From assembly GCA_965202585.1 (NCBI GenBank), contig OZ241828.1, forward strand, positions 71,424,001 to 71,488,000: a stretch of DNA of 64,000 nt, in the 5' to 3' direction. The translations under genes and the position numbers were made by a program. Every line of letters starts with the position of its first letter. Position 1 is the stretch's first letter. Under the pieces are notes generated by a model, which saw only the letters and a list, made by a program, of their open reading frames with translations, was not told the origin of the DNA and did not search any database. The stretch is from Thalia democratica. Its lineage: Eukaryota. Positions 1-41,983 of the stretch are shown in pieces.

Positions 1-118
1 TTGTTACATAACAAAATCAAGTAGCTCTTTCAAACTATTAATAAATAGTTAGTTATTAAAATCTTTAGTTGAGTCTTTAGTTGTACACAACAAATCAAAG
101 TAACTCTTTCAAACTGAC

Positions 119-3100
119 TATATTCCCAACCGAACGGCCCGCGTATCGTCGGCGTTGATGAGATGGAGCCTGAGGTCGCGCGGCGGGTACCCCGTGAAGT
201 AGAGATCGTAGTGAGTGTCGGTCGCTATCAGCGCGAAGAAGGTCGACAGCCGCTTCTGGCACGTGTACCCCGCGCACCAACCGTGGTCTTGCGGTCCTGG
301 GAAAAAGTGTTCAAACTCATATTTGTTAAATTTTTTGAAAACTTCAAATTATTTTAACAATGAAAATCTTGAAATTTTTAAATTGGAATACACAAATATG
401 TCATCTAATTACTTTTACGTCAATAAACGAACCAAGTTATATGGAAAAAAAATATTTAAGTACTTTAACTTTTGTACTTGAGCATTACAAAAAATCAATT
501 AGTTTTAACCTGTTTAAAAATAAAAAAAGTTGTATACAAAAAGAAAAAAACAATACTAACATTCATTGGGATTGATGTAAACTTAGTAACAACACAAATA
601 TTTATTATAATCACACAAAAATGCTGCCTAAACAATTCAAACCAACCATTATTATATTCAAACAAAGTTACATTACAAACTTTATCAAATATTTACAAAA
701 AACTAAACCAAATCAATTCAAACCAACCGTTATTGAGATCGATGTAGCGGTCACCTAACAAAGCCACAGGGGAAAGCCTCCTGAGCTCGGTATCGTCATC
801 CATACTCTCAATCACCAGCATCGTGTAATCCTTCTGAACGCCACCGCTGCAGTCGAACGCCTGCCATTTGTCCTTGTACGTGCAGTTACCCGTGTTCACT
901 ATTCCTGTTTGGTGTAGAAAAATGTTGAATTATTTTAAACAAAAAGTTCAATTAAAGTCCAAAAATTTTCAAAATTGTAACATTTTTGTTTTTTTCTGCA
1001 AAATGTTTGATTATGACGATTGAATAAACACTTTAAATCTACGCAGTATAAACAGTTTCGCTTTTGAAGTTGAAACACATAAAAGGTAATGTAATAAACA
1101 ACAGTGTATAAAGTTGTACTTATTTTCAAATTACATAACAACTCAATTAAGGTGTCATTATAAAACAAATAACTTATCTAACGAAAATTATCGTAAAACG
1201 AGTTAAATCAAATAAATTTAAAAAATAAGTTTTACACATCAGTTTGTTATTTTAAACGTGTTAGATCAAATACAACAAATGCATTATTTTTTATACTAAT
1301 AATTGTCAACTATAACCTCTGTGATCGATTATGTCTCCCACGGGTATCCTGCTTCCGTCCGTTCTTGTCAGCATCGTCTTTGGAATCCTGTAATCACCCA
1401 AGCCCCTCTGCTTCATTGAATCGTCGTCCCAACCGTATGCCGCCTAATTAAATTACTAAATAATATATATATATATATATATATAACACCAAAACATATT
1501 GACAGATGGAAACTATGAAAAAAATAAAAAGATAACTTAATTCACAGTTTTACTTAAGTTTCTTTTAGTAAAATAAAAATTAAGTAATGAATAGTCTGTT
1601 TAGTAATAAAAACTAACATCAGGAATAATGGCCCCGGGCGATCCTAGTAGGGACCCATCCATGTCTTTGATCAAAACGTTTTTGTGTGCATCACATTCCA
1701 TATCAACACAGTCAGATGGATTTATCTTGCTGAAATAACGCAACAGTATTATAAATGTTTGCATAAAGCTCATTTCATCTACATAATTGGATACATTTTA
1801 AACATTTAAAAAACTTTATGTAAGTCTTCTAAATAATTATATTGTCACAAAGAACGTTTTAAACAAAAAAAAAAAAAAGAAACCAAACTTTGCTTTGGTA
1901 GTGTGAAAAAAAACGTTACTTACAAAGCGTTTTTTTTACAGTAATTTACAACTTTGTTAAAATTCTTTTCAACTTTATCAAACATATGGCTTGGCAAAAA
2001 CATACAAATTTTACCAAGCTAATAATACATTTCTTTACTCACCCGAGACCAGGTCTTAAGTACAACACAATAGAATCTTCATCCACGTTGTCCAGCGTAA
2101 TTCCCGACAAGTAGGTGGGAGCGTATGCGTCTTCATTGGACTTGCTTGATTGAAACACCAGATCCCTTGAACCACCAGACGTCGCCTTGAATCCGTAGAA
2201 TGTTGAGTCTGAAGAAACATACGGGGTAAAAAGTTGATAAAAAAGATTAAAAAAAATTGTCAACTACACAAGGAATCACTTAAAAAGTTTGTACAAATAA
2301 ATGGTAGAAACGTTGTTGAAAATATTAATTATCAATGATTTTATGTGTGAAAGTAAATACTTACAAAATTTTGGTCATAAAATTAGTTATTTATTTCTTA
2401 CCAATGTTTACTAAAAACACAGAAGAACGCATTTGCATTAAAGAACTTTATTTTGCGATCAATGCAAGCCATTTATCAAGTTTCATAATTTAAAATTTAC
2501 TTATAATTTCCAGTTTTCCCCTTATAGCCGGGTAGTTCATGTTCTTCAGCCACCCCTTATCAGGCGCGCCTGTTAGCCCACTCTGGAACAACGGCAACAG
2601 TATTCCTATCTTGCCACCCGTCTGCGACCTCGGTGGTTTCTTGCTCGCTGTCCTAAAAACAGTAAGCTTTTGATAATTTAAATTAACTTTATTCTAAATT
2701 TAAAGTAAGAAAATTTACTATAAATACAGAAAATAGTTCAACCTTATATTTTTACCACTACAACAAACTAAATACACATAAATTCAAACATTCTAATTTA
2801 AAATTGATATTTTATATTTATTTAACCAGTCTAAAACTTTACAACTCAACAACGCCAACTAACGGTGAAACGTGGCGGATTATCAAACTCTTGTCGGTGT
2901 TCTCGTCCATGGTGTCAACGTTCTCGTCGAAATGGTCACTTCGCCCAATCAGCAGTAAATTCTCCACTCTGGCGTACTTGTCCTCGTAAGCGTGTGAAAG
3001 TGAGGGTGGTCCGTACACTAGTGGGGTGTAGTCCATATGCTGTTGGAAATACCTTTTTTGAACTTTCTAAATTAGTGGTATTGTGTCAAAATTTAAATAT

Positions 3101-6100
3101 CTTATAACTGCTTTTATTCGCTTGCTTTTAAAAATAGTTTAAATTTTGAATACTGGGATATTAAGATTAAAAATTTTATTTTACGTATTACCCTGGGTGT
3201 TATAAATAAATTCACAACAATTCAGACAAAAAATATTTTGATATGATTCTATAGATTTACTTGTGAGAAAACTTTCGAATATATGTTATTTAAAACAGAT
3301 TTATTTTAGTTTTAATTTTACATGTGTAACTTTTCATAGTACACTAGTAGTCTTTAACTAAGACATGTCAGTATAAATGTTGTCAAGATCCACGCTTATC
3401 TTCGACATTGCTAAGTCAATACAGTTACAACACCTCACCCATGAATCAGCGATGATGGCGTCTTTCAGCACGACACTGGAGGGCGTCTGGTGGTAAACAC
3501 CAAAGTCCCAGTTCTTGTACGCGGTGAAGTCGTTCAGTACAACGCACTTCATCGACCCGTCTCCCTTGAATATGTGGATACCGTGCAAACATCCGTGCGC
3601 TACATTTCCTGTGGATTAGAAAAGTTTAAGATTTGTTGAGGCTTTTTTACAGCTTTTAGATCTTAAATTGGTATTTTAACGAGCTGTATGAACATTCTTA
3701 ACTACAATGATTTATCGATATCTTTCTGAACAAAAATAGTACTTAACTGTTTTAACTTAAAAAACAGTTATTTCATGTAAAAAATAAAAAGTCTTAAAAA
3801 GAAAAGTAAACAGTTCATAATTTTAAAGAATAGTCATCTAACCGCTCCATTTGGTTTCAACGTTGCAGTCTTGCCCGTTCGTCCTGAATCCGAGTCTTTC
3901 TGAACCGGCTGCCACGTTGTTTATGAGGCTCGTGTTCTTACCTTCGACCAATTTGAAGCTTGCGTGCCAATCCTGAATTATAAAAAGAAGCTTGTTTATT
4001 TTTATAAAAAATCCTGTTAAGAATGTGCTGGTGTCAGAATTAGTAAATCCTGAAGGAGAAAAGTTGTTGAATGATTTAAAATTTCTCAAAAATGATTTAA
4101 ATATTTTTGTTTAATTCATAAAACAGAACTATACTGTGTTATTAAACAATGTTTATTTTACCAGGTTGTTTCTTTTTTCGAATCGATCCATCCATGCGCC
4201 TCTGAGCACGGCTTGAGCCACTAAGTTGTGCTCCACTACGATGTTGTTTCCCCCTATTCTTATACCTGCATGAATGTAGCAATAAATAGGATGTTTAGGT
4301 TACTAAACTGACTATTCGTTTTAGATTTTTTTTCAATTTAAATCCATATTACAGCTTGAAGCTTCAAAATACTTTTGGAGATTACTTGTTACTATTGAAG
4401 TAAAAATTTAAAAACACTGTGTAATTAACATTAGTCCTAAGACAAAACCTATGGCAAAAACCACAAACAAATGATACTGAACTAGATAAAGCAAGTTTTT
4501 AAAATGTAATGTTTTTTATAAGTTTATAAGTGCTTCAAAACATTAGTTTTGTCTCAAAAAACAGTTCAATCACACAAACCATCGTGAATGGGCCTGTGGA
4601 CGACGTTGTCCTTCACCGAGATCCCGTCCGCCCCGAATATGCCGATGCCCGTGGAGTAGGTGTCATGGAAACTGCACGCGTGCACGTAAGAGGGCCTGCT
4701 GGCCACCACGGGACCCGTGTTCACCCATGACAACGCGAACCTGGGGTCGTAGGCCTCGGTGAAACCCTCCTGTCCGCACTGGTGGAACTCCACGTTGGTG
4801 AACCGGCCCCAACCTGAGTAATGAAATTTTTCTATAAGTTTTTTTTTAATTTTTAACATACAGTTAAGACATTTCTGAAGACAATAAGATTTAATAAACC
4901 GTTTGGATAGCAATAACTTGAAGAAATAGAATTTTTTAAATAATATCGTAAGTTTTTATATATGCCAAAGTAAAATTTTCACAACTTTAATCCTTTATTT
5001 TAGACTTTTTTTTTTACATAAACTTGATGGTATACTACTGATGAATAAGAGAGTAAATATTAAATAAAAAAATAGAAGTTTAATGCGTTATTGTAAGTAT
5101 GGATACCTAAAATACAGTCTTTACTTACAACGTAGCGTTTTTCAAAGTAGTTGATTATAAAAAGGTATTCAAACAAGTGTTCTTAAAGTTACTTATGATA
5201 ACTTGAACTAAATTTTGATAATATCAACAAACCATAGATATCAGTAGCAGCGGGAATAAATCCTACCAATACACGAGCTCCAAAAGCGTCTCTATCTACA
5301 AAATCGTATCTATCTCCTGCAAAATAGTAATTGTGACGTAATTATAAGAAAGCTGTGTTTATGTACAATTTTTGGCTAGTTTTATCATGAACTTTTTCAT
5401 ATCATGCTGATATAGTTTTTGTAAAATTTGTTTATTTAAAGCAAATTAGATATATCGTTTAAGTTTAAAGAATCACATCGTAGTTCAAGCCAAAGCTTTT
5501 GAAATTATAAGAACCTTCTTTTAACGCAACAAACTAATTAAAATAAATGACAGTGTATTCAAAAAAAAAACATATTAACAACAACTAACCGACAATCTTG
5601 ATGTTTCTAGTGAGCAGGCCGACCTCTGCTCTCATGTTAAACGTCCTGCCGTTTATAGTGTAACTTTCTCCCATGTGCCTGTGATCCAATGCCTTGTTAA
5701 GTTCCAACACTTTGCCCGATTTCGACTTGATAAACCGCTTCTCAGTTTGGCTTGATCTGAATTAAAGTTTACAAAAGATAAAACAGAAATGCTGCGTTTA
5801 TTTTTGTTCTGTAATATTCTATGTTTAGTTTTAAAAGGTTAGCCTTTAAAATTATATCAAAACTGTATTCATATGGCATACAGTTTCATACTACAAAAAC
5901 AAAAGTTTATTTATTATCCAAACTTTAGTATTTATTAAAAGTTCAAATGCAGAATGTCCATTGTTTTTAGTTCTACTGTATATAGTTTATCCTATATTTT
6001 TTTTGGTTCTTGAATCATAGTTATTGAAGTTAAAATGCTTAAAGCTTGATTAAAGTAGTTTAAATAAAACTACAACTTTCATTACTCAAAAATTACCATT

Positions 6101-9100
6101 GCGCAGCTTTTCACAGATGTTTACCGTGTAGTTTGAAATAGTTTGCTTCAGTAAGAAGCTTTTAAAATGTTTATAGTATGCTTTTATATTTTCAACTTAA
6201 AAAAAAAGCTCAAAACAACCACTAACGCGTAACTTGTAGTGGTGATGATAATTTCGTCACCAACGCTCCAATCTACTTCTTCTGTCAGCTTGATACTGGT
6301 GCCTCCAACCTGTACAGTTTCCTCCAAGTTCGTCCAATACACGTTGTGGTTGATTCCATGGAAGTCGCAACCTCCGAAGCAGCCTATGGCTTTTCTGCCC
6401 AGTGTTATTCCTGTTGTAAATGTTATTAGACTGTTTATTATTCTTTATTTTTCAACTATAAGATTTATTCTAATATTTATTTAAAAAAACTTTTGTGCAC
6501 AATGTACTTACTCGTTAATAATCTACAAACTTAATGTATTTTATTATTAATGGAAACATACTAGATTATAATAAAACTCTGTGTAAACTTAAACTTTATT
6601 ATTTTAAATAGTTTATCTATTCTACTTAAGATTTTTTAAGTCATGATTTGGCGTTTTAAGAAAAATGACATATCGAGCACAAATACAGCTTTGCTTATCC
6701 AAAACAAAATTGCATTTAGTCCAGTCGTAAGTTAAATTCCAATTTGTTCAGTAGAACTTGTCGCACGACGACTCAAAGACCGTTTTTATTTTAAGTCGGG
6801 GTTTTTCCTTTACTCGACAGTATATATTTTTTTCTTGTCGTGTTTTTAGTAAGTAAACCACAAGTACACAACGTTAAAACTAGAATTTACAGGGATTTGG
6901 TTTGAAAAACTTCCATGAAAAATTAGGAAAGGTATCAAAAACAATCCAAAGAATGAATATACAAAAAATTTTAAGGGTTTCAAACGCACTACTTTGACTC
7001 AATGTTGAGCTACACATAAAACAATAAATGCATATATTGTAATTGAAGTTAATTTTAAGTAAACGTTTTATGTTTAGTTTCAAGTACAATTGTATAGTCA
7101 ACTCACCCTGGAAGTCAACTTCTTTCACCGTATCAGATCTTTCTCCCACCAAATTTATTGTCAGTTTTTTCAGGAAGGGATCTTCAGGCACGTGGCCAGC
7201 TATTATTCGACCTCCCTGAATAAAAGTTGAGGTTTTTTAGCTGTAACACTAGAAAAATAAAATCTATAAAACTATGTTGACTATAAATCGATAGCTGTAG
7301 ATATAAAATAAAGTTATGAGTTTTATTTTACGAGTTGTAAGAGTTTACTATAGAAAAACCTGAAACACGTTTGTACGATCCTATTACCAAATTGTTGCCA
7401 TATGTTTATTGTTTACATACTTGATGCTAGTATTTTAATGATATGCTTTACCTTAACTTATTTAGACAAGCTCATAATTAAACCGAAGGCTAGAAACATA
7501 AGTTTAGTAGCGAAGTACAGCATACTATAATAGCATTTTTCTTATCTCTTATGTTTTGAAAGTTGTGCTAGTTAACTACTTAAATCAAAGTTAGTCACAA
7601 ATACATCGCAACTAAAATAAATTTGACTGAGGAATTAACATCACAAAAATAAGTTATTTATAAAAGTTCTTACAACTAAGGATCATCTCTTTAAAACTCA
7701 ACTGACGATAACTTGTATGGTGTTGGCGCTGAACGCGAACTCATCGAAATCAACATCCGGTTTGAACTGAACCACCCCCTTGACGATCAGGTGGTTGACT
7801 TGCACGGTTTCTATGTCGATTAGACACCAGCACAGGTCGATGCCATCTGCGGACCTGAGAATTTCAACTGTGATCGAGTCTCCGTCCGTCTGTAAACATG
7901 TATGAATAGTGTTCATTACATTATGTTCAAAACAATTTAAAGTATGGAATTACTTATAAATTCCAAAGATGACTTTTATTTTTACTTTTGTGCACAATTA
8001 CAAAACAAAGTATCATTAAAAGTGTTGAAAAATATAAGAATATACACATATGATAAAATTTTAACTTTTAAAAATATATGTAAAAATTCGCAAAATTAAA
8101 GAATAAAAATCTAAAATCAAGCAAGTTTTAACATAAGCTGTCATAACAATTTCACATAAACATTCAACATTCAAACTAACAGTGATTTCAACGCAGGGGT
8201 GTCCCAATTCCCGCTTCTTCCTTTTGCCACTAGAGGGAAACGTTATATTGCTCCAGTTGAACGCGTCAGCGGGGGTTTCCCTTCCCGGGGGCACCGCGTC
8301 ACCGCCCACGTCAGGTACGCATCCCGCGTTCTTGCAACTGTGAATATGTAAAAAATTATTTTGTTATTGAAATAAAAGTAAAATAACTCAACGCGTTCTT
8401 GCAACTGTGTAAGCATATGAAAGCTTTAAAGTTCTAAGACTGTTTAGTTGCAAACTTAATAAAAATCTTGTAACTATTTTTGTTATATTTAAAAAAAAAT
8501 GTTTAAGTGTTCTTGCAGCTGTTGGTAGAAACTAAGCAACGAAGAATTATAAGTAGAACTTTCACTCAACACAATGACTGTACAACAAATAAGAAAAGAT
8601 ATCTTCATTACTCGCTTAATATTTATAGTAGAAAATTCATTTGCATGTGTTCCTATTCTATTTAGCTATCATAAACGTTTGTTTGTACATACAAGTTTAC
8701 TGTTTTATATGAAAAACTATTAAAGTCAAATAACAATTTACTTTTTTACACCTTACATTATTGCGCAATGGAAGTCAACCACCTTTGAAAAAATATTAAC
8801 AGCTCACCGATAAATCTTGGGCACGACGGCTACGTGCTTTATGTTATCTTCAACAACTTCCAAAGCTCTCTTCTCCTTACCGCCATCCGTGTTGCCCACT
8901 TTGTAGTCCAAGTTCTTCGTGGACGGGTTGAAGTAGAAGTCCAAGTTTTTGCTGTCGGTCGTAAGCGGCACCGAGTCGGCAACTTCTATCGGGGCCGGGC
9001 CCAAGTTGACTCTGAAATGTCGTTAGTTTTTTTCATGTAATAAATAATTTTGCGTTTGTTTTTTTTTTACAGTTCTGCAATATTTTTAAAAGGTTTTCAA

Positions 9101-12100
9101 GTCTGAACAGCATCAAGTTATAGCCGTGTCAAATTGTTTTGAATTAAATATCAAAAGTTTTTTTTTTAGATTTTGTTCACTATCCGTGGCTCTATTTCAA
9201 TATTTAATTCTCATGCACCAACAAAAAAACACTTCTAAAACTAAACTTGTAAACTAACACGTCGGGAGCGGATTCCAGTTCGTGCCTCATTATGACATAA
9301 TCGCCCGGCATGAAGTCGTAATACTTTGAAGTGTACGAAATATTGGTGAACCCGTCCGCACCCCTCCAGTTTATTTCGTGCAACTTCTTACTGTACAGCA
9401 GCGCCATCCAGCCTTTGAAATATATTTTTAAATAAATCGTAATTAGATTGTTAGAATTTTAAAAAACCTTAGCTTATAATAGATTTTACAAAATTTGTTT
9501 CTATTAAAAAAAACTTTGATTCTCTATGATTACATTTAAGAAAAGTTAATAAATTCAGTATTAATTTTAACAAGTATCTAGTTTTTAAGTATTTTGTTAT
9601 CAACTGAAAAAGTGTAATCTAAAGCTTAAATTTCTTAGTTCTTTGTTTTACGAATCATTTATTATTCAACCTGGTTTGTGGGTCATCCTCTTGGGGGCGT
9701 ACGTCACAGACGATGTTCCGTACTCGTTGGTGAGGAGAAGGTCTTTGGTCAGTAGGGATTTAGGGACTGTCCCTTTCATGGCCATCCTGTGAAATCTGGT
9801 CGTCTGAGGGCAGCGGAGAGAGGAGAAACTGCCCCCTGAATATTCCGCACCAGTCAGCATCTGTTAGTTTTTGTTTTAATTTAAGCAAGTTTTGCAAAAT
9901 GAGATTTCGTTTTATAAAACCAAAGCATAAAAATAGTTATACCAAATATTTTTTTATTCTTAGTCACTACAAAAATATAAAAAGCTTTCTACGTATAAAC
10001 ATGTAAGGGAATAAAAAGTTTTTATTTGAAAAATTAGTGTTTTAAAAATTCTTTTAATTCAAACAAAATATTTCAGACAAGATAAATGGCTGCATCGCAC
10101 CATCTAAACAGACAACCTCGCAGTCGGGAGAGTTGACGATGCCGCTCAACGGAACCAGTTTCGATCCCGGCGCGGACCCCGTCAAACTTCCGTCTTCGTC
10201 CTGAAGCACTCCCTCGTGTTCGAACTTCCAATGAACTTTCCTGCTCACGTTCGTCCAAGACAGTCCTGTTGTTTGTTTATAATTTTGTTTGGATCTTTTT
10301 TTCAGGTCGTTTACATGATTACAAAGCTGCTGCAAACGCTTTTACTTTTTAAAGCGTTAAAAACAATGTTGTTGCTTAAAAGAAAAGCTTGATAGTAATC
10401 TTGATCCAGTATAAGTTATAACACATTAAGTTTTAGTAAATGTTAAAGGTTTAGAAAAAACATTTGCTTTTATACTTTTTAATTTTTTTTAGTTGTAACA
10501 CGTAGAGGGGGGGGGGAGTTAGTTCTAAAATATATACCTTTCATGATGTAGTAGAAGCCACCGCACAACTCAGTGCAAGTGCCATCGATTGTTGTCATTT
10601 TGAAAGCAACACCTCCTCTGTTGAAATTGTAAAATTCCAGATCTTCTATCGTAAGCCCCGGTGATAACGGTAACCTCTGTTGTTGAGAATAATTTTTTTT
10701 TGTGTTATTTACCAAGATTTTAGAAATTAATTCTTAATATTTAAATGCAACCCATGCAGATAGGCTATCTTAGCTTTAATATCAAAGTACAAAAAGGGAC
10801 CTTGAAACTGTTTTATTCATAAACTGTATAAGCTCTTTGAACTGACTATAACTACTACAGGTTAAATAAAATCGATATTGAAAGATACAAAAATGTTATT
10901 TTTTAAAGTCAACTCACCATGGCAACCTTGGTTTCGAAGTTGGCGGGCGAAATGGACGCGTGGCCCACCATCAAGCCCCCTTTCACCACGGCCCCCTTCT
11001 CGTAGCCGTACCCCGTGCCCTTGATGAACTTCATGTCAATTGACGCCTTGTCGTTGTTCACCATGACGAAATCTATGAACTGCATCGCCGAGCAGTCCAC
11101 CCACTCGGCCCCCTTCTCGCTGTTCCACGTGGTCAGCGTGCGGAACCTGGCCGGCGAGGGGATCTTCCCCGTACAGCTGTGGAAGGGGAAAGAGTAAGAG
11201 AATGTAGCTATTTTAGACTAAATACAACTGCGGAGGAAAATATTATTGTTGGATTATAGACTTTAAAGTTTTAGATTTTGTGTTTATTGAACAACAGCTG
11301 TGAAATGAAAAATTGACTTTTGAAACTTTTGTGGAAAATTGGTAATTCAACTAAACACTGTACTAAACCGCTTGTTTATTTTTTTAATTGTTTTACTTTA
11401 CTTGTTCCACGTGGTTAATAAGTGTGGAACATTTACTGAACGACTGCGAGAGGGGAAAAAGTGAGAGCTTGTAGATGTTTTAGACTAAAAAATATTTTTT
11501 GCTAGAAACCATTTAAACTTTGTAGGTGCATATTTAAGTCTTAGATATACGTTTTTGAAACATGTTTTAAATTACAAGGACATTTTGAAGTTTTAAACGC
11601 TTTAGGTGCATAAAATTTACATGAAATTTGAAGTATAACAGATATTGAGATTTATTAAATTTTATTTATCCCATTGTTTTCCTTTCCCCGAACAGCTGTG
11701 GAAGAAAATATTAATAACTGTGTTTTTGCCTTTGTTGGATTGGTATTAGACTTTAAAGTTGTAAATGTTTACTTGTTGAACAACAGCTGTGAAACGAAAA
11801 ATATGAATTTTGAAGCTTTTTATAAAGGCGTTTAAATTGTTTTAAAAATTTGAAGGCGAAACTTTTGTTAGCACAAACTGCGTTGTTAAAACAATTCCTA
11901 TAATGTGTTTATTTGAATTTAATAAAAAAAGCTTTTCAAGCTGTATAAACATAAAAAACCTGCTTAAGTCTCAAATGGCACAGAGAAACATACATTTAAA
12001 AAAAAAACAACAAACCTGCTACCGACGACGGGAAAGTACGACTGAAATATCCACAACCCGAACCACCCGTGACTGTGCACAGTGTTATTCCTGAATATGC

Positions 12101-15100
12101 CAAGCTCCACCTTCTGCTGGCACACGTCGGGGGTGTACGAGGGGCCGTCGGGGTTCTTGTGCATCCGGTACCAGAACCCGAAGTGGGTGCCTCCCGCGGC
12201 GTGGTTACCAAAGACCGTGTTGTTAGGGTTAGTCACCCAGTAAGCGGCTGTTAATGTTTTTGTTTAAAATAAAGTAGTTTTCTTTACTTTTCTTATTTTT
12301 GTTTTATTGACAATGATTATGTCGCAATTGTCGAGAACCCTCAAATGTGTTTTATAGGCAGTAGTGAGTTTGTTTCATTTGTTAACGTTGTTCGTTTTAA
12401 TATAAGTAATAATTTATAGTAAAACGTTTAACCCAATTCAGTGTAAACTAGAGAGTACGAGTGCTAAAATTTAAACTATTCTAAATCTGCTTTCTCTGTT
12501 CTAAAAAGTTTATACAAGAATGAAGTTGAACAAACCAGGTGTGACGTCATCGTTCAGTAGCGAAGTGCTCTGCCTGACGAATATTGCCAGGTTGAACTGC
12601 ATTGTGATACCAGTTTCAATTCCGTCCTCGATGAAGAACGCCCCACCCATCACGTCATATATCACCGTTCTGTCGATCAACAGGTTGTCCGTACCTATGA
12701 GTTGTAGTTTGATAAAACTAAAGTAACTCATGAAGATTTAGTAAAAGTTAATTGAGGTATCCTTAATTCGTTGTGCTTCTATAATTTGGCAAGTTAAAAA
12801 ATTAAAAAAATTAAAGCCGTTTGTATTCAAAAACTTCTATAAATTTATAGCGTTATTTTTATAAGCTTAAAAGTTTTGGGCTGTTCTACATTTAAACAAA
12901 AGCATGAAAAAGTGTGGTAATGTTCGTAACTAGATGCATTAAAAAACAAACAAAGAACGTTTTAGTCAAAATCTAATTTTATAAACAATAAAAACTAACT
13001 ATCAAACTTTTACAGAAGTTCCAAAATATTTATATAAGATTTAAACTTATTTAAATTTACAAAGGATATTTTACTTAATTATTTCACATTTATTGTGTTG
13101 TTGAATATCCGGAACGAAATGAAACGTTATGTGTATCAATACCCGATTTGTTAAGTAATATTAAAAGAGGTACTACACATTTTATACAACAAACCGTGTA
13201 TGGCAACAGCCCTGTTGAAAGTCTTGTGAATGGCACATCCTCTCACGTACATGCCACTTACATCTCCCATCAAATGCCAATGAATTGGATACCTGCAAGG
13301 TTAATTAATGTAATCGAAAAATATATTTTACAAGGCATAAAACTACTTTAAAGCATATCGAAACTTATCAACTAACCTCTTTAAAAAAAATGAACACAAA
13401 CATAACTTTTTTTTTAAAGCTTATATTATAACTCGTTTTCAATGTTTGTTATATATTTGTACTACTAAAGTATAACATAACTGATCCAAACTCACCTTCC
13501 GAGCCTGAAAGCCTGCCCGACGTAGGTGAGTTCGACGTACTCGATTTTCGCGACAGCTTTGAAGGAGTTCGCTTCTTTCGCGTGGATCATTATCGAGGCT
13601 CCGAACTGATCAGATCCAACCTCCTCTCCGAATCTTCCCTGGATGATAAATACATTTTAAATAAATAAATTTTGAAAAATTAAAAAAAAATTGTCAAAAA
13701 ATAATAAATACGCTTAGAATTTGTAAATTTTTTTTAAATTTTTTGTGAAAACTTAAAAGAAACAACCTATTAAAGCATTAATAAAATACATTTTTTAGTA
13801 GTATACAAAACTTATCCTAAAAATTAAAAACAAATTTGAAATGTATGCAAGTAAGTAGAGTTTGTAAAAATATCAAAATTTCGTAAATTAAACACGGTAT
13901 GTATTAAAACTTAACAAAGTTTCCTTGAGCTATTGAAAATTTCAAAATATTTAATTGAAACTTCGAAATCATTTTTGAAATGATCAATCTTTTATTTATA
14001 GTGCAAATACGTCAACATCATTATCGTACCTGGAAGCAGGTTTGCGTGGCAAACTCCCCTGTATCGAAACCCTCTTCACACGCGGGAATGTCGTCATGCC
14101 AGGCGGGGTCGCTCGATCCCCTCACAACTATGTTCCTTGACAACAGACCCACCTCGGCTGTGAAAATGTGATAAACTTTGTTGCTATGAAAATTATACAC
14201 CTTGTTTTAATAAAATCGATAAAAAACCTCTGAATTCGACTGTGTGAGTTCCAAACGTTTCGTCAATTCCAAGATGCTCGTATTCTAACGGCTCATCTAA
14301 CGTTAATTCCATTTTGTCTAAAATAAATTAAAGTTGTTTATAAAGGATCGTTAAGTTGTACTAGTTTTTTTTTTAATTTACACTAGTTTTATATAAAGAT
14401 TTTTAAAGGTCAAAACTATTGATAAGCGTAAAAGTAAATAATTCACTTAGTGAGATCACAATATTTTCATACTTTCAAAAACAAAAAAAAGTAAAACTGA
14501 TGAGCTGCAACTGCTTATTACGAAAAACCTACCAGACGATATCGCAGTTATTTTTCTCTTTTCGTTTTCTATTTGCGAGTGCCTGTGACCGGTTGACGCA
14601 ATTGCGATTTCGTCGCCCACTCGCCAGTTTTCAGCAGCATGTTGTAATTTTATCTACGCAGAAAAATCGAATATAGTGTTTTATATTAGTTAGAATATTT
14701 CAAACAGTTGTACATCTTTCAAAGTTTTCCATTATTAAGTCTTAAACTTGTGTTCTGCTGTTTGTTCACTTAAAGTTATAAAAAAATAAAGTTGTTTCGT
14801 AGTTTTATACAAAATTTTAAAACTCGAAATTTAACCACTTTACAAAAAATGTACAATTTACAGTTGCGAATTGCAAACGAACCTTGCTGCTGCCTTTGGA
14901 CGCGGTTTGTGCCAGCTTGGTCCAAGTGAAAGGGATGTGCCTCCCGTGCAGCTCTAGCGTCCCGTCCCTCACACCCAGAGTCTTGGCGCCGTATATGGGA
15001 AGCTCAGGCGATCTCAGCTGGCCGTACAACACGATCTCCGTGTTCCTCTCGTAAGGCTCTTCTTCCGTGCCGACCTGTTTGATGAGTTGAGAAACCGTTG

Positions 15101-24100: not shown

Positions 24101-27100
24101 ACAAACAATTAAAAATCAAAAAATTGTAGACATATTAAAATTAATATTAATAATATTCACTTGTAACGATAAAAATGTTTCTGAATTACTTTCGACAAAT
24201 ACTCTTTAAGAAAAAAATCTATATGATAAATTAAACAATAAATGTAAATTAAGTTTAAGTTGTTTTTGACAATTACTCTCGTCTAAAATAACAATAAGAC
24301 AAATTACCAAGTTTCCCAATTTCTCAGCTTCGGGGTTTACCCTCACTGTGACGTCATGGGTGATTGGTTCGCGCTCGGTGACGACGATCCTTCCCGCCAT
24401 TTCGCTCCAGTTCCATATGAGGGACTTGAAGTGGATGGTGCCAACCTCAGTCACTCTGTACTTGAACGAACCTGGTGGGTGAGTACTTATGACGTCATAT
24501 TGCTTACGCGTGCGAGTTTATCACTCTGATAAATGCTTTTTGAAGTTTTCATTGCATGTTTCACAAAAAAATAAAAATTGACTCTTTTTAAGTTGAACTT
24601 TAGAATAATTTCTCAAACGTTGCCTACAGTTTTTATAGATACAGCAATGTGTACACACATAATATTTTTTTTTGAAAGCAAATTAGCTTTAAAACCAATT
24701 CAAAGAAAATCCAACAAATAAAAGTTTAAGTGTTTTTAAGAATTCATTTATTAGGTATCGTCTAAACACTTAACACAACTGAACAAATTTATTTTAGAAA
24801 CTCCAAAAAATTTATGCACTCTAAAAACCTTTCTTGGTGGGTTCCACGTTGAACCCGTCCCCGTCGTACTCCTGGGAAACGGGGTCGGAGGTGGTGAAGG
24901 GGCCGATTACGACGTACTGGATGCCTTCGGGCAGCTCCCAAAAAAACTCGATCTCGTCGCCCACCTGGGCGTGGGTCACCCGCGGGTTCCACGCGAACCC
25001 GGTGCCGTAACCTGCGGAAATAAAAAAGTTTTGATGAAATCAGGTTGAAAGTATGACTTTTAAATGAGAAATGGGCAGTTGTTTGAAGCTTGTTGCAAAA
25101 ACCTACTGCTAATTTCTTAAACTGGAAAAAACAAAATTTTGATTTGAATAAAGTACTAGTTTTTGATTTGAGTTTAATTTTACTTGTTGTAACCACAAGT
25201 AGGTTTGATTAAACAAAATGTAAATTAAGTTGGCAGAAATATACTAGGTATATTACTTGATTAATGGAAGAATATTTTTTGAAAAAATAGTTTTTAATAC
25301 AAACAAACTCTTGCTTCAAGCTTTACTACTCTCTTCACAGCTTTTAAACAACACAAATATACAAAGCGTATTACATTCTACTAAGATCTTATTATGACGT
25401 AACAACCAACTTTTGTGGGATCCCTGGTTATCAACCCTGTGGGTCATGGTGGCCGGGGTGGTACGGCATTTCGCTTCGGTTCCATTGGCAATGTAAACTT
25501 CACAGGGTGATTCCCCAACTGTCACCTTTATGTCGTCATAGAGACCCTCCCCATTGATCTTCAGGTTCACTCCTCCCATGATCGACTCCTTCCGCGGCCC
25601 CACCAAATTTATATTGAACGGGTACTCGATGAGGTCCCTGAAAAAAAAAAGTTTTTGTTTTTATTTCTTAATAACTTTTTACAATTTTTAAAGAAAATAA
25701 GTTTATTTTGTTAGTATTCTATTTCAATAAGAAATACTATTATAACTGAAGGTATATAATAAATTGAAGCCCTGTTTTGTAACGGATTTCTAAAAATAAA
25801 ACATTTGTTTCACATTACTCACGTAGCAACCAAGGGGCAACTGTCGCCGTCTACGTTGACGACGAGCCGGTGGTTGCCAGGCAACAGCTTCGGAGTAATC
25901 AAAACGATTTCACTATCATTCCAGCTGGTGATGGTTGCCATGGCGCCACCTACAGTGACCGTCCCGTTCGCACCCAGGTTTTTACCGGATATTGTTATCG
26001 TGGTACCTGAACAAAAGTTATTAAAATAAACCTAAACTTTGTTGACCCTAGTGTAGTATTAATTCTTTAAGCAGCTAGAGTTTAATTACAAGTTGTTGTT
26101 AACTTGAATATGAGGTTAAAACACACTTCTGTGCCATCAAAAATTTTATTTTAAGTATGAGTCAATAATAACAACATAGTTGATCATTTTTTAATACTTT
26201 TTTTATATTGTAACTTAGCCATCACAAACTATATTTATGTATACACAGTGTTTTCTACATAGTGATAGTGGTTGTACGTTTTAAACAAATAATTTCAAAT
26301 CGAAACGCAAACCTCCGATTCTGTCGGACTTGAGAGGCGCCACGGCGGTAACTACCGCTTGAGAACTGCTGAACTTGTTAACATCCACCGATGACTTCTG
26401 CAAGTAAGTTTCGCCGCCCGACATTATTTTCACATCCGTTCCGTTCAACAAGCTGCTGACGTCACCGATTATGACGCACAATACTTCCGTGTAGCTTTTC
26501 GTTGTGACGTCACACGCTGATGAGTCGCCCACTTGCACCGTTAGATCGCCTTCGGGCGGAACAAGACCTAAAACAAACGTTTGTGACGTAATAAGAAAAG
26601 TTATGACAAAACTATTGCTACTGCAAAAGTATTGATACGTATCTGAGTACAACCATCAACTTCATTAATAATTTAGTTGATGCGTTTTATTTATGCGACA
26701 AAAATATTTACATAAAGTTATGCCAAAGTTGAAGCAATTATATTTTTGTTATATTGTTCAAAAATATTTTCAAACAAATAAATATTGTAAGCAAACCTGT
26801 GCCGGTGATTTTAAGAGAAGTTTTACAACCATCGCCGGTATCTATCGACTCAACAGTGTCTATTCCTCCAACCACTTTTATTTTGTCGGTGTCGTTTGCA
26901 AAAGCTGCTTTTCCTAAGTTTTGAAGTAATTTTTTTTACAACAATTTATTCTTAGTTTTAGGTCAAACAAATTGAATGTTTTTATTATTCCTGTATTTTC
27001 TTAAAATCAGCTGTTTCAGAAACGTGTTTACATAAAAAAGTTTTTAAATCTTATAAGTATATGATTTTAACATGAAAAAGTAGAAAAAAAGTTCAAGCTG

Positions 27101-36100: not shown

Positions 36101-39100
36101 GACTTGTCGTCTTTCACCTGTTGGTTTGTAATGTAAACAGTTGAACTTTTTTATTATATTTTATGGGTTCATTATAAAATTGAAATTTTTTAGTAAAAAC
36201 AAAATAATGTCTGTAATTTTACTTAATGAAAGATTTTTATACACAATACTATTAATAATAGTAATAATAAATAATTATACAGTTTTAACATTAATCAAAT
36301 ACTTGAATAAAATTTGTTTACAATAACTGATGATCTCATATATGCAAATATGGAAATGAAACCTTTTTTTGTTGATAACAAACTGTAAATGTAAATATTA
36401 GATAAAAGCTCCTTAAAGCTATTTAAGTAGAGCATATACAAAACTTAATTCATTTTTGTTCATAGCGCATTAATCGAAATGTAACTTTTTTTACGAAAGC
36501 TCTTTATACTAGTTTATTGTTGTCAAATATTTGACACGCAAACACCCACTCTAAATCTGCAAGTGTGGTGGTTCCACCTACTCCTGCACAACTGCCTGTT
36601 CTCCAGCCTGTACCCGTTGACTTCCATCTGTATGTAGTAATCGTCCTGCCTCATGTTAGGCCTGTTTTTTCATTTGTATTATGACGTATACTTTGGCTTT
36701 GTTATATGTTAGGGTATTAAATTTTCATGTGTTTTGAATGTTGACTGAGTTTAGGGTTGATTTGGTTTGCTCCCCTTTTTAATGGGAATAGTTAAACATA
36801 AAAACTTAACTAGCTATATTGTAACAAGTTGCAATTTATTAAATTCTTTACAGAAGTATTTTTTAACAAGTCTAGAAAAATTAATTTTATTGCAAAAATT
36901 GAAAACGCGTGTTTAATTTTTTTTTTAATTCATAAGATAAATAATAAGCCACACTTACGTTTTTACAGTAGAAATTTTCAACGCTTGTAAAACATTAGTA
37001 CAAGTTGGCAACTGAACTTTTGCTTAAAAAATGTCACAAGTACATTTCTAAGGAAACAGCATAAACCAATCATGCAGTTAATACAATGGGAGAGGAAGTA
37101 ATAATAATGAGAAATTCGCATTTATCTTAATCATTCGTCTGTGATACGTGAGGGCGCGACATACAAAGTACATGATGAAAATAAAATGAAAGCCTTTGTT
37201 TTTCAGTTATAAAACCATAAATGTGTTTTGCAAATAATTTTTTTTTTAACAATTTTAAACAAACAACACTATGCTCTCTGAAGAAACTTCATTACAAGGT
37301 TTTGAAGGAAAACCCTAATAGCTATCTAATAATAGAACAGTCAACTTAGTGAAATATTTTTAAAAGATGATCATTGATGAAGTGTATATGTTTGATCATT
37401 AAACTAAGTGCAAGTATGTTGTAAGTAGCTAAAATGAATACAGTGCGGCAAACAACCTACATTAATTAAAGCTAAAACCGTGGTTAATGACTATACAAAA
37501 AATATCACAAACATAATTTCAATAAACACACTTTACGTATTTATTTTAATGTGTTTTTTTTTCTTTTTTGGTCTAAGAAGCGAAAATCTAAGTAACGTAA
37601 GCTGTACTTAAAATAATTTAAGTAGATGAAGTTAAAAAATGTAAAAAAAAATAGTAGTTTAAAAAGTCAATTTAAAATCATAAAAATGTTCATTAAGTTT
37701 TTTAAGTTAACCAAAACCACCACAGTGTAGAGCATATTTATTTTGTATAGTTAATCGTGAACCAACACGGTGTAGCAGACTGCTTGCTGCTCGTCGCTTT
37801 CCGCTTGGTGGAACTCGCACGGGTACTCTCGCACGGCTGAAACGAGGAACATCTTCGTGCGGGGAGACTTCGATCCCCAATCCAGCTCCGCATCGAAATC
37901 TGGGACATCGAAAGTTTAGACGTTTAGGTAATATATCTAATGTTTTTAATTAAAAAACTATAATAAATAAAGCGTTTTTCGACAATATGTTTTTACTAGA
38001 TTGTTAATAAAGGTTTATAAATCATAAAAATCTTATGTACTAGTGCTAGGTATTTTTAACTCTTAGATGTTGAAAGTATCTTTTTTGAACTTCCACGAGA
38101 AAGTTTTCAATACTTGTATTTTATTTATATTTTGATCAAGACTCTTAAATTGTAAAAACTCTATGTAATAACGCGCAGTGTGTTTTAAATTCTTGGATGT
38201 TGAAGGCAAATGTTTTTATTTAGTACGAGTTATTTGTTTTATTGTTTGATTTTAAAGTGTTATTAGTCCTTGTTGAATTTAACATGATAAATTTTCTGTT
38301 TTAACAAAAGCTTTAGCTCAACATTTTATATTTATGAGCAGACATTACAAAGCAAAAGTAGCAAAAAGTTTATCTGCATCCTTTAGTAATAATAAATAAT
38401 CATACAGTTTTAACATTAATCAAACATTTAAGTTAGATTTGTTTACAACAACTGATGATCTCCTACATGCCAATATGGGAATGAAACATTTTTTGTTGAT
38501 AATAAACTATAAAAGAAATAGTTAATAAAAGCTCCTTAAAGCTTTTTAAGTCGAGAAGTTTAAACTGCTTGACTTAAAACAAATTACAATATTAATAAAA
38601 CAGTATAAAAAACAAACTTCTTCCGAAAGCTTTAATTTTCACGCCACCACCGTTACCTCCCTCATGTGGCTCAATGTCGTTTATTTTTATATCTAAAAAA
38701 ATAAATTTATGTAGAAACTGTTTTGGTATCAGAAAGAAAAACTGCTAGATAAATTGTTCATTTTGATAAATGAAAAAATAGATTGTTATTTTGATATATT
38801 TATAAAATTTAAAAAAACTATTTTTTTTCGATGGACGAAAAAAAAAGGTAAAAAAAGATATTTTTATATCCGAAATAATAAATAAACTATCGGTTATTTT
38901 CATATCTAAAAAAAAATGTTGTATATTTCGATATTTAATAGACACTTTTTTTTGATATCTGAATACACATAATTTTTTGAATTTTTTTTTTCTGAAACAC
39001 TAATTTGTTGCAAAGTGTTATTTTTTGATATCTTTAATATAAACATTTTTCTAATTTAATAAATAAATAGCTTGTATATATATTTTTTACAGGTAAGGTT

Positions 39101-41983
39101 CATTAGTGTTTATCTTAAAGATATAATTTAACAATACTGCATACGTCAGCATATTAAAAGTTATAAACTTATTAATTTCTTACTGTTTTAGCTTTTAATG
39201 ACTTAAACACTAGTTTAGAAATTAAAAATAAGCGACATTCTTTAGTCAATAAATGAACTTACATGAACTTTGAGTTAACAAAATTGACGTCATATGCAAA
39301 ACAAATTGCAAACTTATTCGGTAGGATGTAAGCATTTAAAAACTTGGTTAAATTTGTTACATAACATTTTAGTTATTAACTATAACTTTCAGACATAAAT
39401 GACAAAACTTGATAAACTGTTTTTGGACGACAAATTTCAGGTTCAACGCCTTTATGCTTAAAATTGACGTAAAAAAGTAATTTTATTTGTTTACAAAATC
39501 CTTAATAAGCTCTTGTGTTGAATTTATTTCTTTGTGTTGTTATGTTAAGCCGTCTATTGTATAAAGCGTTTTTTTCCCAAACCTTAGAGAACTTATAAAC
39601 TTTCAGTTTAAGCTGGTTTTATGTAAGTATAAATAAAAAGTAGGTCGTTAGCTTATGAAAATTTTCAATTTGTTTTAAATCAACTTATGTACAGTTGGTA
39701 GTTATGAAAATAAAATATTAAAAGTTAACAATTTGAATGTTTTTTAAGCTGCTTAACACAAACAAATCAGAATTAAATTACGTAAAACTTCATGAATCAC
39801 TTATTGTAGGTATAGATTGTTGTATTAAAAACAAACAATGAACTTAAAAAAATTATTTGAAAAGTTTAAACGTTTAGATTTTTTTTGAATATTTTCGTGA
39901 TTATAATTAACATTTTTAACTACCGATAAATGATATACCTAAGAACATAAGAAGCTCTTATTTCAACGTCTTTAATTTATTCTTACTTAGAACCTAGTTT
40001 TTTGAACAACAAGTTTATGTCTTCTTGCTAGTTTAAAATATTACCGTGTTTAAGTAAAATATAAGCTAATAACTTTATTATTTCTATATACTTTTTTGTT
40101 AAACTTTATAAAATTATGTTTATCTATTCTATTTTAATTAAAGTGTCTTCAAACTTTAATGTTTTTTATAATATCGCAAGCTTTAATATTCCTAACTCAA
40201 GGTTGTACTTTTAACTTAATTATAACTAATAGCAACCGTTAGATTAAACATTAAATTGCAAACTTGGTAATTTTTTTTAATGATTTTTTATATTATGTAA
40301 CTGTTGTACAACGTATATACCGATGCAGTTAAAATGTATTTGTAAACATGAAATCATTTCCTATTCAAGCAACTTAAGCTTAAACTGATGCTTGAAAATA
40401 AACTTATTCGTCATTATTATTCTCTTATTTGTTTTCATTAATTTTTGGTATTTTTAACACATATTGGTTACTCAAACAATTTTTTTAATATACTATACAA
40501 AAAGAACATAAAAATTTAAGTTCAAACACCTTAAGAAAAAATTGCAACCACAGTTTAACTTCACAGTTTAAAACATTTTTAAACATAAGTTTACCCAACA
40601 CTTGAATATATTACTTTGAAACCATGTTTACAGTTTAAACTTAATATTCAAGTGCTTGTAATTTTCTTTTCCGTATGGTATTTTAAAACCTTTTATTTGA
40701 GTAATTACTTAATCTAACTAAAAGTAACGGATAAAAAAATCTACATTTTAATTTTCTACAAAAACTAAATTTTATAAAAATTTATACTTATTTTAGAATT
40801 TTTTATAGAGTTGAAGTTAAGTATCTCACTTTGAATCGATGAGCAAAATTTAAAATCTTTATAAAACACTTGTACTAAAAACTATTTGGAAAAGCTCTGT
40901 TTAAATTCGTTAAAGAAAGTTTAGTAAGATACCATTCATGTTGTGTTATTTCTACTAGTAAAACTAAATAGAATTAGTTAGGTTCAAATAAGTTTATTTT
41001 TATTTATGCAAATGATTTCTCAATTGACATAAACTACTAATTCTTTTTTAATTATGTTCACGATAATCCAGTATTTTTTTACACCTAACTGTATAGTAAT
41101 TTTTCAAACTACAAACTTAGTTTTTTATAAGCATCGTTTTCAAGTTTTTAAAACTGTATATCCCTCATTGAAACTTTTAATTTTCACTTTTCAACAGGCT
41201 ACTATGTGTGTGACTATTAAAAATGTTTCGTATTCAACTGTAAATATTTTTATATTGCATCAACTTAACAAACACAAACCGAAAAGTCTTGAATATTTTA
41301 AATAAGTTTAAAACTTTTTATTTTGTAAAACACAATTCTACAAGTTTTAATGTTTGTTTAAACTATAAAGGAAATACTTTATAAACACTTTCAGTGCACC
41401 ATTTTTTAATGAAAAAAATTTTAGATACAATAAACTTCAAAAAATGAACTTTTTCAGTACTTAGCATATCAAAATACTTTTTGTTTTTTGTTATATTTTT
41501 ATAAAATGGAATAGAAAAAAAAGGTAGATATTACTAGAAACTAATACAAAAATGTCTAGTATATAGAATTACATTTTAACGTATTTTATGAATTCAGCTA
41601 GCTTCCGTTACAGTTAACCTATATATCTGTACTTAAAAATTTAAAAACTAATTAGACAAAACTTAAATTTTGATTGATTAGAACTTACTTTATTTAAACT
41701 CTATGCAATACTTTGCATAGTTTTTCTTTCAAAAAAAATATTGAAAAAAAAACAAATAATATCTGATTTATGCTAACTTATATCGACAATTAATGCTTTT
41801 GTTATTAAATTTCTTAAATTAACATAAATTTTTATAGTACAGAAACTAAAAGAATTAAAGTACACATATTTTTTTCAAACATAACTAACTTGAATAATCT
41901 TCTTCCGCTACAGCTTGCCATGCGCAGAAACAAATTGCAAAAATTAAAATATTTGCTGAAAGCCAAGCTTTCATTTTCGTCAT
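119..41983 (-). CDS. PKHD1L1: Fibrocystin-L (PKHD1-like 1) orthologue; 74 in-window coding exons, 3' end outside window
   Basis: Manual splicing gives one open frame (11,480 nt). Peptides match my recollection of the vertebrate PKHD1L1 sequence: GRIFTDIIASS, IYMFQTHA, SPPVGGTFD, WSSTFTWGG (G8), AEVGLLSRNIVVRG, YPIHWH, THFGFWYRM, INPSDCVDMECDA, GPQDHGWCAGYTCQKRLSTF. Exons 5'->3': 41890-41983, 38618-38692, 37767-37899, 36550-36661, 35915-36117, 35077-35261, 34614-34714, 34196-34370, 33710-33891, 33279-33438, 32779-32964, 32190-32345, 31634-31883, 31276-31411, 30728-30908, 30272-30388, 29913-30047, 29608-29681, 28946-29136, 28315-28492, 27855-28029, 27270-27434, 26797-26913, 26313-26567, 25823-26006, 25411-25637, 24829-25011, 24308-24471, 23599-23695, 22872-22988, 22042-22193, 21589-21731, 21065-21183, 20485-20643, 20174-20287, 19480-19707, 18889-19064, 18567-18651, 17767-17922, 17278-17446, 16876-16999, 16390-16527, 15414-15554, 14883-15074, 14533-14653, 14228-14317, 14030-14157, 13496-13638, 13195-13292, 12536-12694, 12016-12247, 10918-11176, 10538-10676, 10117-10265, 9671-9860, 9259-9412, 8808-9011, 8181-8337, 7707-7889, 7107-7215, 6227-6410, 5590-5756, 5233-5316, 4580-4813, 4162-4265, 3843-3972, 3439-3608, 2864-3039, 2501-2652, 2043-2208, 1618-1729, 1317-1443, 728-904, 119-296. 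All are GT-AG with matching phases. Confidence 0.95.
15727..15982. mobile_element. Putative Tc1/mariner-type MITE in a PKHD1L1 intron
   Basis: Ends CAGTGCTTCCTC...GAGGATGCACTG (11/12 complementary), flanked by TA on both sides. Single copy in the window. Confidence 0.5.
18110..18231. mobile_element. Small inverted-repeat element (possible MITE) in a PKHD1L1 intron
   Basis: TGACCGGTTTGGTGTGAAA...TTTCTCACCGACACCGGTCA, an imperfect inverted repeat of about 19 bp that is GC-rich relative to the intron. No clear TSD. Confidence 0.35.
36261..38555. repeat. Dispersed direct repeat of about 170 bp in two PKHD1L1 introns (36261-36432 and 38386-38555)
   Basis: Shared blocks ATACAGTTTTAACATTAATCAAA, TTTGTTTACAA.AACTGATGATCTC, ATATGG.AATGAAAC and TAAAAGCTCCTTAAAGCT. 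Confidence 0.85.
41890..41983 (-). CDS. PKHD1L1: PKHD1L1 first coding exon encoding the signal peptide
   Basis: MTKMKAWLSANILIFAICFCAWQAVA-EEDYS: basic N-region, hydrophobic core and an A-V-A cleavage motif. The phase-1 GTTAGT donor fits exon 2 (38618-38692, start of the first TIG domain: IKINDIEPHEGGNGGGVKIKAFG). Not in the ORF track. Confidence 0.85.

Follow-up and report, generated by a model that had tools for sequence, protein, structure and literature searches.

Frequent T at donor position +3 and two families of U1 genes in the salp Thalia democratica

We analysed a window of 64,000 bp (C4:71424001-71488000) from the 801.8-Mb genome assembly of the salp Thalia democratica, with respect to the 5' splice sites, or donors, of a large gene within it and to the U1 genes of the same genome. 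The gene lies on the minus strand at positions 119..41983 of the window, comprises 73 exons and ∼3,790 codons therein, and encodes a protein resembling PKHD1L1 (fibrocystin-L). Its exons have a GC content of ∼50-60% and are separated by introns with a median length of ∼300 bases and a GC content of ∼24% (76% A+T). According to blastp, the predicted protein is collinear with 23 homologues of 3,100-4,600 amino acids, the best of which shares 44% identity over 2,574 residues. The collinearity with PKHD1L1-type proteins is full-length and includes the CEMIP-type β-helix region; in relatives, the orthologous exon has PF24606. The end of the predicted protein aligns at approximately residue 3,790 of homologues that reach ∼4,450 residues, indicating that the 3' end of the gene runs past the start of the window.

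The exon chain was built using a Viterbi model of our own that combined codon log-odds, obligatory GT/GC...AG intron ends and weight matrices for the splice sites, the latter omitting position +3. Because +3 was left out of the scoring, the tally of bases at this position cannot be circular. All donors were predicted from sequence, and their support came from the alignment of junctions with homologues or paralogues rather than from transcripts. The principal features of the gene are as follows, with a slash marking the exon-intron boundary.

41890..41983, minus strand: exon 1, with the start codon and a signal peptide (open frame, hydrophobic N-terminus); it ends in ...TCAA/GTTAGT, with the donor G at 41889
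38618..38692, minus strand: exon 2, in which the first IPT-like domain begins; acceptor TTTTTTAG; donor GTTTGT, with its G at 38617
4574..4579, minus strand: donor GTTTGT of exon 63 (exon 4580-4813)
727..38617, minus strand: the 42 internal donors with T at +3, this base being unused in site choice. The +1 G of the first 21 is at 38617, 37766, 36543, 35914, 35076, 34613, 34195, 33278, 32778, 32189, 31275, 30727, 30271, 28945, 28314, 26796, 26312, 25410, 24828, 22871 and 22041; that of the other 21 is at 20173, 18566, 17277, 16389, 15413, 14882, 14227, 13194, 12535, 12015, 9670, 9258, 8180, 6226, 5589, 5232, 4579, 3842, 1617, 1316 and 727
2500..33709, minus strand: 15 donors with A at +3; +1 G at 33709, 29607, 27854, 27269, 21064, 20484, 19479, 18888, 16875, 14532, 14029, 10537, 4161, 2842 and 2500 (GTAAGT at two, 33709 and 16875)
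2042..31633, minus strand: 11 donors with G at +3; +1 G at 31633, 29912, 25822, 21588, 17739, 13495, 10917, 8807, 7106, 3438 and 2042 (GTGAGT at six)
115..24300, minus strand: four donors with C at +3; +1 G at 24300, 10113, 7706 and 120
+1 G at 120, minus strand: putative final donor in the window, ATA/GTCAGT, placed here because homologues run ∼650 residues further

An earlier inspection of the same sequence, hereafter the original prediction, had an upper coordinate that coincides with the donor of exon 1 (41889) and had reported an excess of T at +3 (T 44, A 15, G 13 and C 2 in 74 donors). The +3-blind model reproduced this excess. Its 71 internal donors carried T 42, A 15, G 11 and C 3; with the donor of exon 1 (GTTAGT) and the last donor (GTCAGT) added, the 73 donors carried T 43, A 15, G 11 and C 4. 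The commonest hexamers also agreed, with counts in the model and the original prediction, respectively, of 12 and 12 for GTTTGT, 8 and 9 for GTTAGT, 7 and 7 for GTTGGT, and 2 and 2 for GTAAGT; GTGAGT occurred six times in the model. At the 37 junctions that were spanned ungapped by at least three homologues, the bases at +3 were T 24, A 7, G 5 and C 1. In the usual eukaryotic donor, T occupies +3 in only a few percent of cases, and the donors of the PKHD1L1-like gene clearly depart from this pattern.

The donors of this gene held 0.19 bits of information at +3 and 0.04 bits at +4. The strong positions were -2A, -1G (0.5 bits), +5G (1.4 bits), +6T and +7T (0.36 bits), such that the conserved signal reads A(-2) G(-1) / G T n n G T T. 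Position +7, whose pairing potential the original prediction did not mention, was T in 64-72% of donors as compared to ∼38% T in intron sequence, and matches nucleotide A2 of the salp U1. At exon 63, the similarity of the coding sequence to that of a relative from marine plankton (81% amino acid identity) ended exactly at the GTTTGT donor (4579). At this position the plankton relative has GTTGGT, and its next donor is GTTTGT; the corresponding intron of a second relative (79% amino acid identity) begins with GTAAGT. Tara Oceans plankton samples yielded close relatives of one of the exons.

As the introns are 76% A+T, the excess of T must be weighed against chance. Among the 1,313 GT dinucleotides in the introns of the PKHD1L1-like gene, the next base was T in 48%, A in 31%, G in 13.5% and C in 8%. 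Compared to this GTN background, the +3 bases of the gene's donors did not differ significantly when the gene was taken alone (p = 0.07-0.15). Taken over all intronic GT dinucleotides, T came next in 49%. About half of the T excess is expected from the AT-rich sequence itself, and the original prediction's term, a shifted code, overstates the case.

We also examined a sample of donors beyond the window. Sixteen dynein heavy-chain genes were located by a Pfam search of the genome, and 10 kb was taken from each of 11 of them, on six chromosomes; the sample thus comprises 11 dynein genes and is not a true random set. Two random 10-kb pieces of the genome were almost gene-free. Taken together, the 158 predicted dynein donors had T 47.5%, A 33%, G 11% and C 8% at +3, which equals the background. 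The 79 donors whose junctions were spanned ungapped by at least two paralogues carried T 46, A 23, G 8 and C 2, and the 79 without such support carried T 29, A 29, G 10 and C 11 (T 37%, A 37%), the near-background pattern expected of noise. The combined well-supported set, comprising the 37 homologue-spanned donors of the PKHD1L1-like gene and the 79 paralogue-supported dynein donors (n = 116), had T 60%, A 26%, G 11% and C 3%. This set differed from the background (p = 0.039; T alone, p = 0.02; depletion of C, p = 0.02), and no heterogeneity between genes was found at +3 (p = 0.44). These data confirm that the GTT donor bias is real and extends past one gene.

As a control, we applied the identical +3-blind pipeline, self-trained, to the PKHD1L1 orthologues of two unrelated organisms from metagenome assemblies, L094 (ENA ERZ27241786 k141_218995) and L099 (ENA ERZ25067576 ctg10927). 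As their overall identity is only ∼40%, they served as method controls and not as relatives. Although the intronic GTN background in these controls was 43-46% T (46% in L099), the +3 bases were A 11, T 2, G 2 and C 1 in L099, with GTAAGT on top, and A 5, G 4, C 2 and T 2 in L094. Pooled, the controls differed from the salp with an odds ratio of 9.5 for T at +3 (p = 6e-6). The A-rich or purine-rich +3 obtained against a T-rich background indicates that the procedure does not manufacture T at this position. Both control organisms are marine, and one has a far more compact PKHD1L1 exon spacing than the salp gene.

We then tested for preference by comparing used donors with unused intronic copies of each hexamer. 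The enrichment in donors was as follows.

GTGAGT: 30x
GTTGGT: 27x
GTTCGT: 13x
GTTAGT: 13x
GTCAGT: 9x
GTTTGT: 7x
GTATGT: 4x
GTAAGT: 4x

GTTNGT occurred as 68 donors and 126 unused copies, compared to 16 and 96 for GTANGT (odds ratio 3.2, p = 6e-5). The same held for a pair matched in composition: GTTAGT occurred as 22 donors and 33 unused copies, GTAAGT as 8 and 39 (odds ratio 3.25, p = 0.016). Across the 229 donors, GTTTGT was the commonest hexamer (28), followed by GTTAGT (22), and GTTGGT occurred 14 times. The original prediction had suggested that a G at +5 and a T at +6 compensate for the unusual +3. In support of this idea, +5G was present in 74% of the +3T donors as compared to 42% of the +3A donors; -1G was present in 75% of the +3A donors, and +4A in 72% of the +3G donors. 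To a first order, the purine requirement at +3 has been lost and T is not obligatory. Strong donors nevertheless prefer T approximately threefold over A, and GTAAGT has no special standing in this genome despite matching the universal U1 perfectly.

Nucleotide 6 of U1 pairs with intron position +3. A genome search with the Rfam U1 model (RF00003) scored 42 copies, whose 5' ends fell into three classes: AAACTTACCTG (universal arm), AAACTTACTTG (C9 to U) and AAACTAACCTG. A pattern search in which the first nine bases of U1 were left free yielded 62 U1 5' ends, comprising 42 canonical AAACTTACC, 18 A6 AAACTAACC and two others. The canonical family of ∼42-44 genes has an ACUUAC arm (5'-AAACUUACCUG), suited to pairing with GUAAGU and, through a wobble pair, with GUGAGU. 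The A6 family of 18 genes has an ACUAAC arm (5'-AAACUAACCUG), which complements CAG/GUUAGUUU exactly. The two families thus differ at nucleotide 6 of the pairing arm, where the change from U to A makes the arm an exact complement of GUUAGU. Position 2 is A in both, as also occurs in nematodes, and +7U can therefore pair. The original prediction had envisaged a variant U1 with an ACUAAC or ACAAAC arm. The former was found, and the U1 set is not canonical-only, with 18 A6 genes beside 42-44 canonical ones; neither ACAAAC nor any other changed arm occurred among the 62 5' ends, the C9-to-U class being the only further departure at the pairing bases.

Several lines of evidence show that the A6 genes constitute a distinct, constrained paralogue of U1 and not a scatter of mutants. 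All A6 copies scored by the Rfam model passed its threshold of 69.5 bits, at 104.8-118.9 bits over model positions 1-166; the remaining copies are known from the pattern search only. The first 15 bases were identical in all 18. In an alignment of 22 U1 sequences, 10 of the 43 predicted pairs showed double compensatory changes. Between the canonical and A6 families, these affected two pairs of stem-loop III (GC to AU and UA to CG) and one of stem IV (CG to GC), at columns 99-113, 100-112 and 146-160; inspection revealed a further compensatory change in stem I (A-U to G-C). The canonical and A6 copies share the same loop I and loop II motifs, although loop I differs from the vertebrate consensus in all U1 classes of this genome. 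The A6 copies also have a U-rich, Sm-like site. A TGACGTCA element was located ∼70-78 bases upstream in 16 of the 18 A6 copies and at the same distance in canonical U1 genes. A nearby copy that has decayed (72 bits), its arm and promoter both degenerate, illustrates the appearance of a dead U1 gene.

A6 genes are clustered on C4, C5, C6 and one unplaced contig, where each usually has a canonical neighbour ∼1 kb away. Independent contigs derived from DNA reads contained the A6 copy at multi-copy depth, 2.5-12x the single-copy level; the k-mer depth of canonical U1 in such contigs was ∼35-60x that level. The U1 clusters form large inverted or direct duplications: C4:47265910-47270347 is mirrored at C4:47290703-47295140, and a further pair is found at C6:57942005-57945061 and C6:57977248-57980304. 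Each duplicated cluster contains canonical and A6 copies in a fixed order, and on C4 also a copy with U at nucleotide 9 (U9), which suggests that the U1 classes were amplified together. The third class (C9 to U) numbers at least 11 copies, reads AAACUUACUUG, and has compensatory stem changes of its own and the same upstream TGACGTCA; it is found at C4:47268894-47269056, C4:49690569-49690732, C6:57865452-57865615 and other loci (L029, L030, L042-L051). By its sequence, this U1 would pair with A, not G, at exon position -1. A scan of metagenomes yielded no salp-type U1 5' ends.

The other RNAs that contact the donor appeared unchanged. U6 occurs in many identical copies and agrees with the universal sequence up to and including ACAGAGA, and loop 1 of U5 is canonical; nothing in these RNAs therefore marks a change. 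We also considered loss of N6-methyladenosine (m6A) from U6 as a cause of the GTT bias. This was rejected, since an open reading frame for a METTL16-type methyltransferase is present. The match, the sole one in the genome (C5:38935362-38936207; L071), covers the domain without stops and lies inside a frame of 447 codons, which, given that genes are otherwise densely interrupted, suggests that this gene is intronless. A search for self-pairing between intron ends was likewise negative: the 5' end was complementary to its own 3' end over 4.94 bases and to those of other introns over 4.87, which is no excess. The U5 genes form long tandem arrays, with one gene in every repeat of ∼15-16 kb (e.g., C26:7971-8085, every ∼15.1-16.6 kb), on unplaced contigs (C26, C37, C79, C100, C141 and C208; locus L085) and at the ends of C9 and C10.

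We also inspected the 3' ends of the introns of the PKHD1L1-like gene (119-41983, minus strand) and of loci L074-L084. The acceptors were essentially CAG/G and had no polypyrimidine tract, with A approximately equal to T from -20 to -4. ACAAAC/CAAACA was enriched 3-4x in the last 45 bases of the introns, and TCTAAC was enriched as well; judged from sequence, this enrichment is a possible branch-site signal. ACAAAC is the reverse complement of GTTTGT, the commonest donor hexamer. The ACUAAC arm of A6 (e.g., L060:301-315) spells the consensus of branch sites, to which SF1/QKI bind and with which U2 pairs. The likeness may be coincidental; the A6 U1 could conceivably also touch branch-site factors. 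The remainder of the window (42000-64000) has a GC content of 23-29% and few GC-rich exons. It includes a possible low-GC gene on the minus strand at ∼47677-59391 and short repeated open reading frames near 63266-63811.

To account for the donor bias, we propose that the purine requirement at +3 was lost and that two U1 families, both made into U1 small nuclear ribonucleoproteins (snRNPs), now share the donors, with A6 reading GUU. We put the probability of this explanation at roughly 55%. It starts from direct observations, namely the donor statistics, the two U1 gene families, the covariation and the shared promoter element. Once assembled into U1 snRNPs, the A6 form would initiate recognition at GUU donors, leaving those with GUA or GUG to the canonical form. 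Each would benefit from base pairs at +5 to +7, with A2 extending the helix to the last of these positions. In this view, the A6 RNA would be expressed, assembled and used on GUU donors. The broader picture, of an intron-rich animal with two parallel U1 snRNPs of different donor specificity in which A6 reads the majority GUU class, is more tentative. The interpretation offered in the original prediction is partly supported overall; its most specific element, a U1 with an ACUAAC arm, exists in the genome, and this variant U1 is new here.

A number of findings weigh against this explanation. The A6 genes are in the minority (18 versus 42-44, ∼2.4-fold, the gap in depth being larger), whereas GTT donors are in the majority. 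Although pairing with A6 should enrich +4A, this base was found in 31% of GTT donors as compared to 25% of the background. The commonest hexamer is GTTTGT and not GTTAGT, the exact complement of A6, and the most enriched, GTGAGT (∼30x), fits canonical U1 only. Pairing counts and energies with the canonical, A6 and U9 arms favoured no arm as a discriminator: in register, the canonical and A6 arms parted donors from decoys equally, with an area under the curve of 0.88-0.90 in a donor set that is biased because other positions served to pick the donors. Every donor is a prediction. Finally, the +3 bases of all 229 predicted donors equal the intronic GTN background (p = 0.82), and loss of constraint alone thus explains much of the pattern.

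This last point is the core of the main rival, which we regard as distinctly less probable than the two-U1 explanation. According to it, AT-biased mutation filled +3 and +4 once constraint was relaxed, and canonical U1, with tolerant pseudouridines, holds the donor by gripping -2, -1, +1 and +2 and an extended helix from +5 to +8. A6 would be a minor, specialised or non-splicing variant, as most human variant U1s are. The near absence of information at +4 (0.04 bits) is as this rival would have it, as are the numerical dominance of canonical U1 (∼2.4 to 1 in the assembly and more in k-mer depth) and the strength of +5G, +6T and +7T, on which +3T donors lean more heavily (74% +5G). By contrast, relaxed constraint does not predict that T should beat A threefold relative to decoys in strong donors (p = 6e-5), that GTAAGT should be enriched 4x and GTTAGT 13x, or that well-supported donors should differ from background (p = 0.039) with C depleted. 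It also leaves aside that the A6 structure is kept by compensatory changes and that 18 of 18 copies share the 15-base 5' end. The threefold preference for T over A and the conservation of the A6 family argue against plain relaxation, which nonetheless keeps an appreciable probability.

Selection might instead act at a later stage, with +3U favoured not through U1 but through U6, by a U·G wobble beside the helix that ACAGA forms with +4 to +6, or through U5 or U1C. The ACAGA sequence of U6 pairs with the +4 to +6 region of donors, GTTTGT could conceivably pair from +3 to +6 with the ACAG of the ACAGAGA box, and U6 is present in many identical copies. However, the ACAGAGA box and U5 loop 1 are the universal sequences, with nothing lineage-specific visible in them, and the METTL16-type gene gives no indication that U6 m6A was lost. 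In addition, +4U was unenriched, and GTTTGT was less enriched than GTTAGT or GTTGGT. We consider such selection improbable. Still less credible is an artefact in which modelling mis-calls donors because GTT outnumbers every other GTN in such AT-rich DNA: the reliance on prediction, the background-like unsupported donors (T 37%, A 37%) and antisense 'shadow' models with ∼48% T would allow it, but +3 was kept out of the scoring, the homology- and paralogue-supported subsets have more T and not less, a control whose background is just as rich in T shows an A-rich +3 under the same pipeline, and coding conservation with a relative stops exactly at a predicted GTT donor.

The pairing of the U1 5' end with the donor is among the most conserved RNA-RNA contacts in eukaryotes, and lineages whose donors are unusual, such as yeasts, Giardia and Trichomonas, have in general left U1 as it was. 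If the two-U1 explanation is correct, the salp, with its thousands of GTT introns and the multi-copy U1 that matches them, would provide the first animal example in which a core splicing signal had changed in concert with its reader, and the first step of intron recognition would be split between two readers. Such a natural dual-specificity system would render old questions testable: how a splice-site code drifts without breaking every gene, whether U1 dosage limits a change of code, and how U1 and U6 share in donor choice. In practical terms, gene predictors trained on GTRAGT will mis-annotate such genomes. In the literature searched, from which most subscription journals fell outside the scope, nothing relevant was found on salp or thaliacean small nuclear RNAs (snRNAs) or on ACUAAC/GUUAGU in connection with U1, and the salp genome papers examined (one being PMC13746493) did not analyse splice signals or snRNAs.

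It is well established that a single base change in the arm of an engineered suppressor U1 allows a donor with a mutation at the complementary base to be recognised again. Those are laboratory constructs, of which the salp case would be a natural, multi-copy and genome-wide counterpart. Available accounts of the human U1 multigene families describe expressed paralogues with altered 5' ends that could read non-consensus donors. Those human RNAs are rare, and the consensus of human donors has not shifted, whereas the predicted specificity of salp A6 matches the commonest donor class of its genome. In the larvacean Fritillaria borealis, most introns are non-GT/AG and both versions of U1 have identical 5' ends; duplication and divergence of U1 were argued to be constrained and not the route taken (NAR 2026, PMC13326754). 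Like the salp, Fritillaria is a tunicate with a transformed donor repertoire and conserved U6 and U5 elements. Unlike Fritillaria, the salp has kept GT and possesses a U1 paralogue with a different 5' end.

Reported co-changes of U1 and donor are few and occur in amoebozoan protists (Roy & Bowser 2022, bioRxiv 10.1101/2022.06.08.495308). The closest precedent is Entamoeba, whose donors are GUUUGU(U) and whose U1 arm has become AACAAAC; a different U1 change is found in Mastigamoeba, and such co-changes are stated to be otherwise unknown, yeasts, Giardia and Trichomonas keeping the standard arm (same reference). Entamoeba resembles the salp in having +3T donors together with an altered U1 arm, and in an A that precedes the arm and extends pairing to +7. 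However, Entamoeba is intron-poor, its donors are near-uniform and its only U1 gene differs at two bases, whereas the salp is intron-rich, has heterogeneous donors and a change at one base (nucleotide 6), and retains canonical U1 in larger copy number. A co-evolved system of the Entamoeba type would have the complement of the changed arm as its commonest donor, and canonical U1 would have been replaced; in the salp, GTTAGT ranks second to GTTTGT, GTTGGT fits by wobble, and 42-44 canonical genes persist beside the 18 A6 genes. For Physarum polycephalum, standard and ACAUAC forms of U1 have been reported, the details being unpublished (according to Roy & Bowser 2022, bioRxiv 10.1101/2022.06.08.495308). 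Physarum thus resembles the salp in having standard and modified U1 arms in one genome and donors that match the modified form, and differs in being a protist whose changed base pairs with +4 (GUAUGU) and not with +3. Judged by its gene complement, the salp arrangement would be a dual system, closer to that reported for Physarum than to a replacement of the Entamoeba type.

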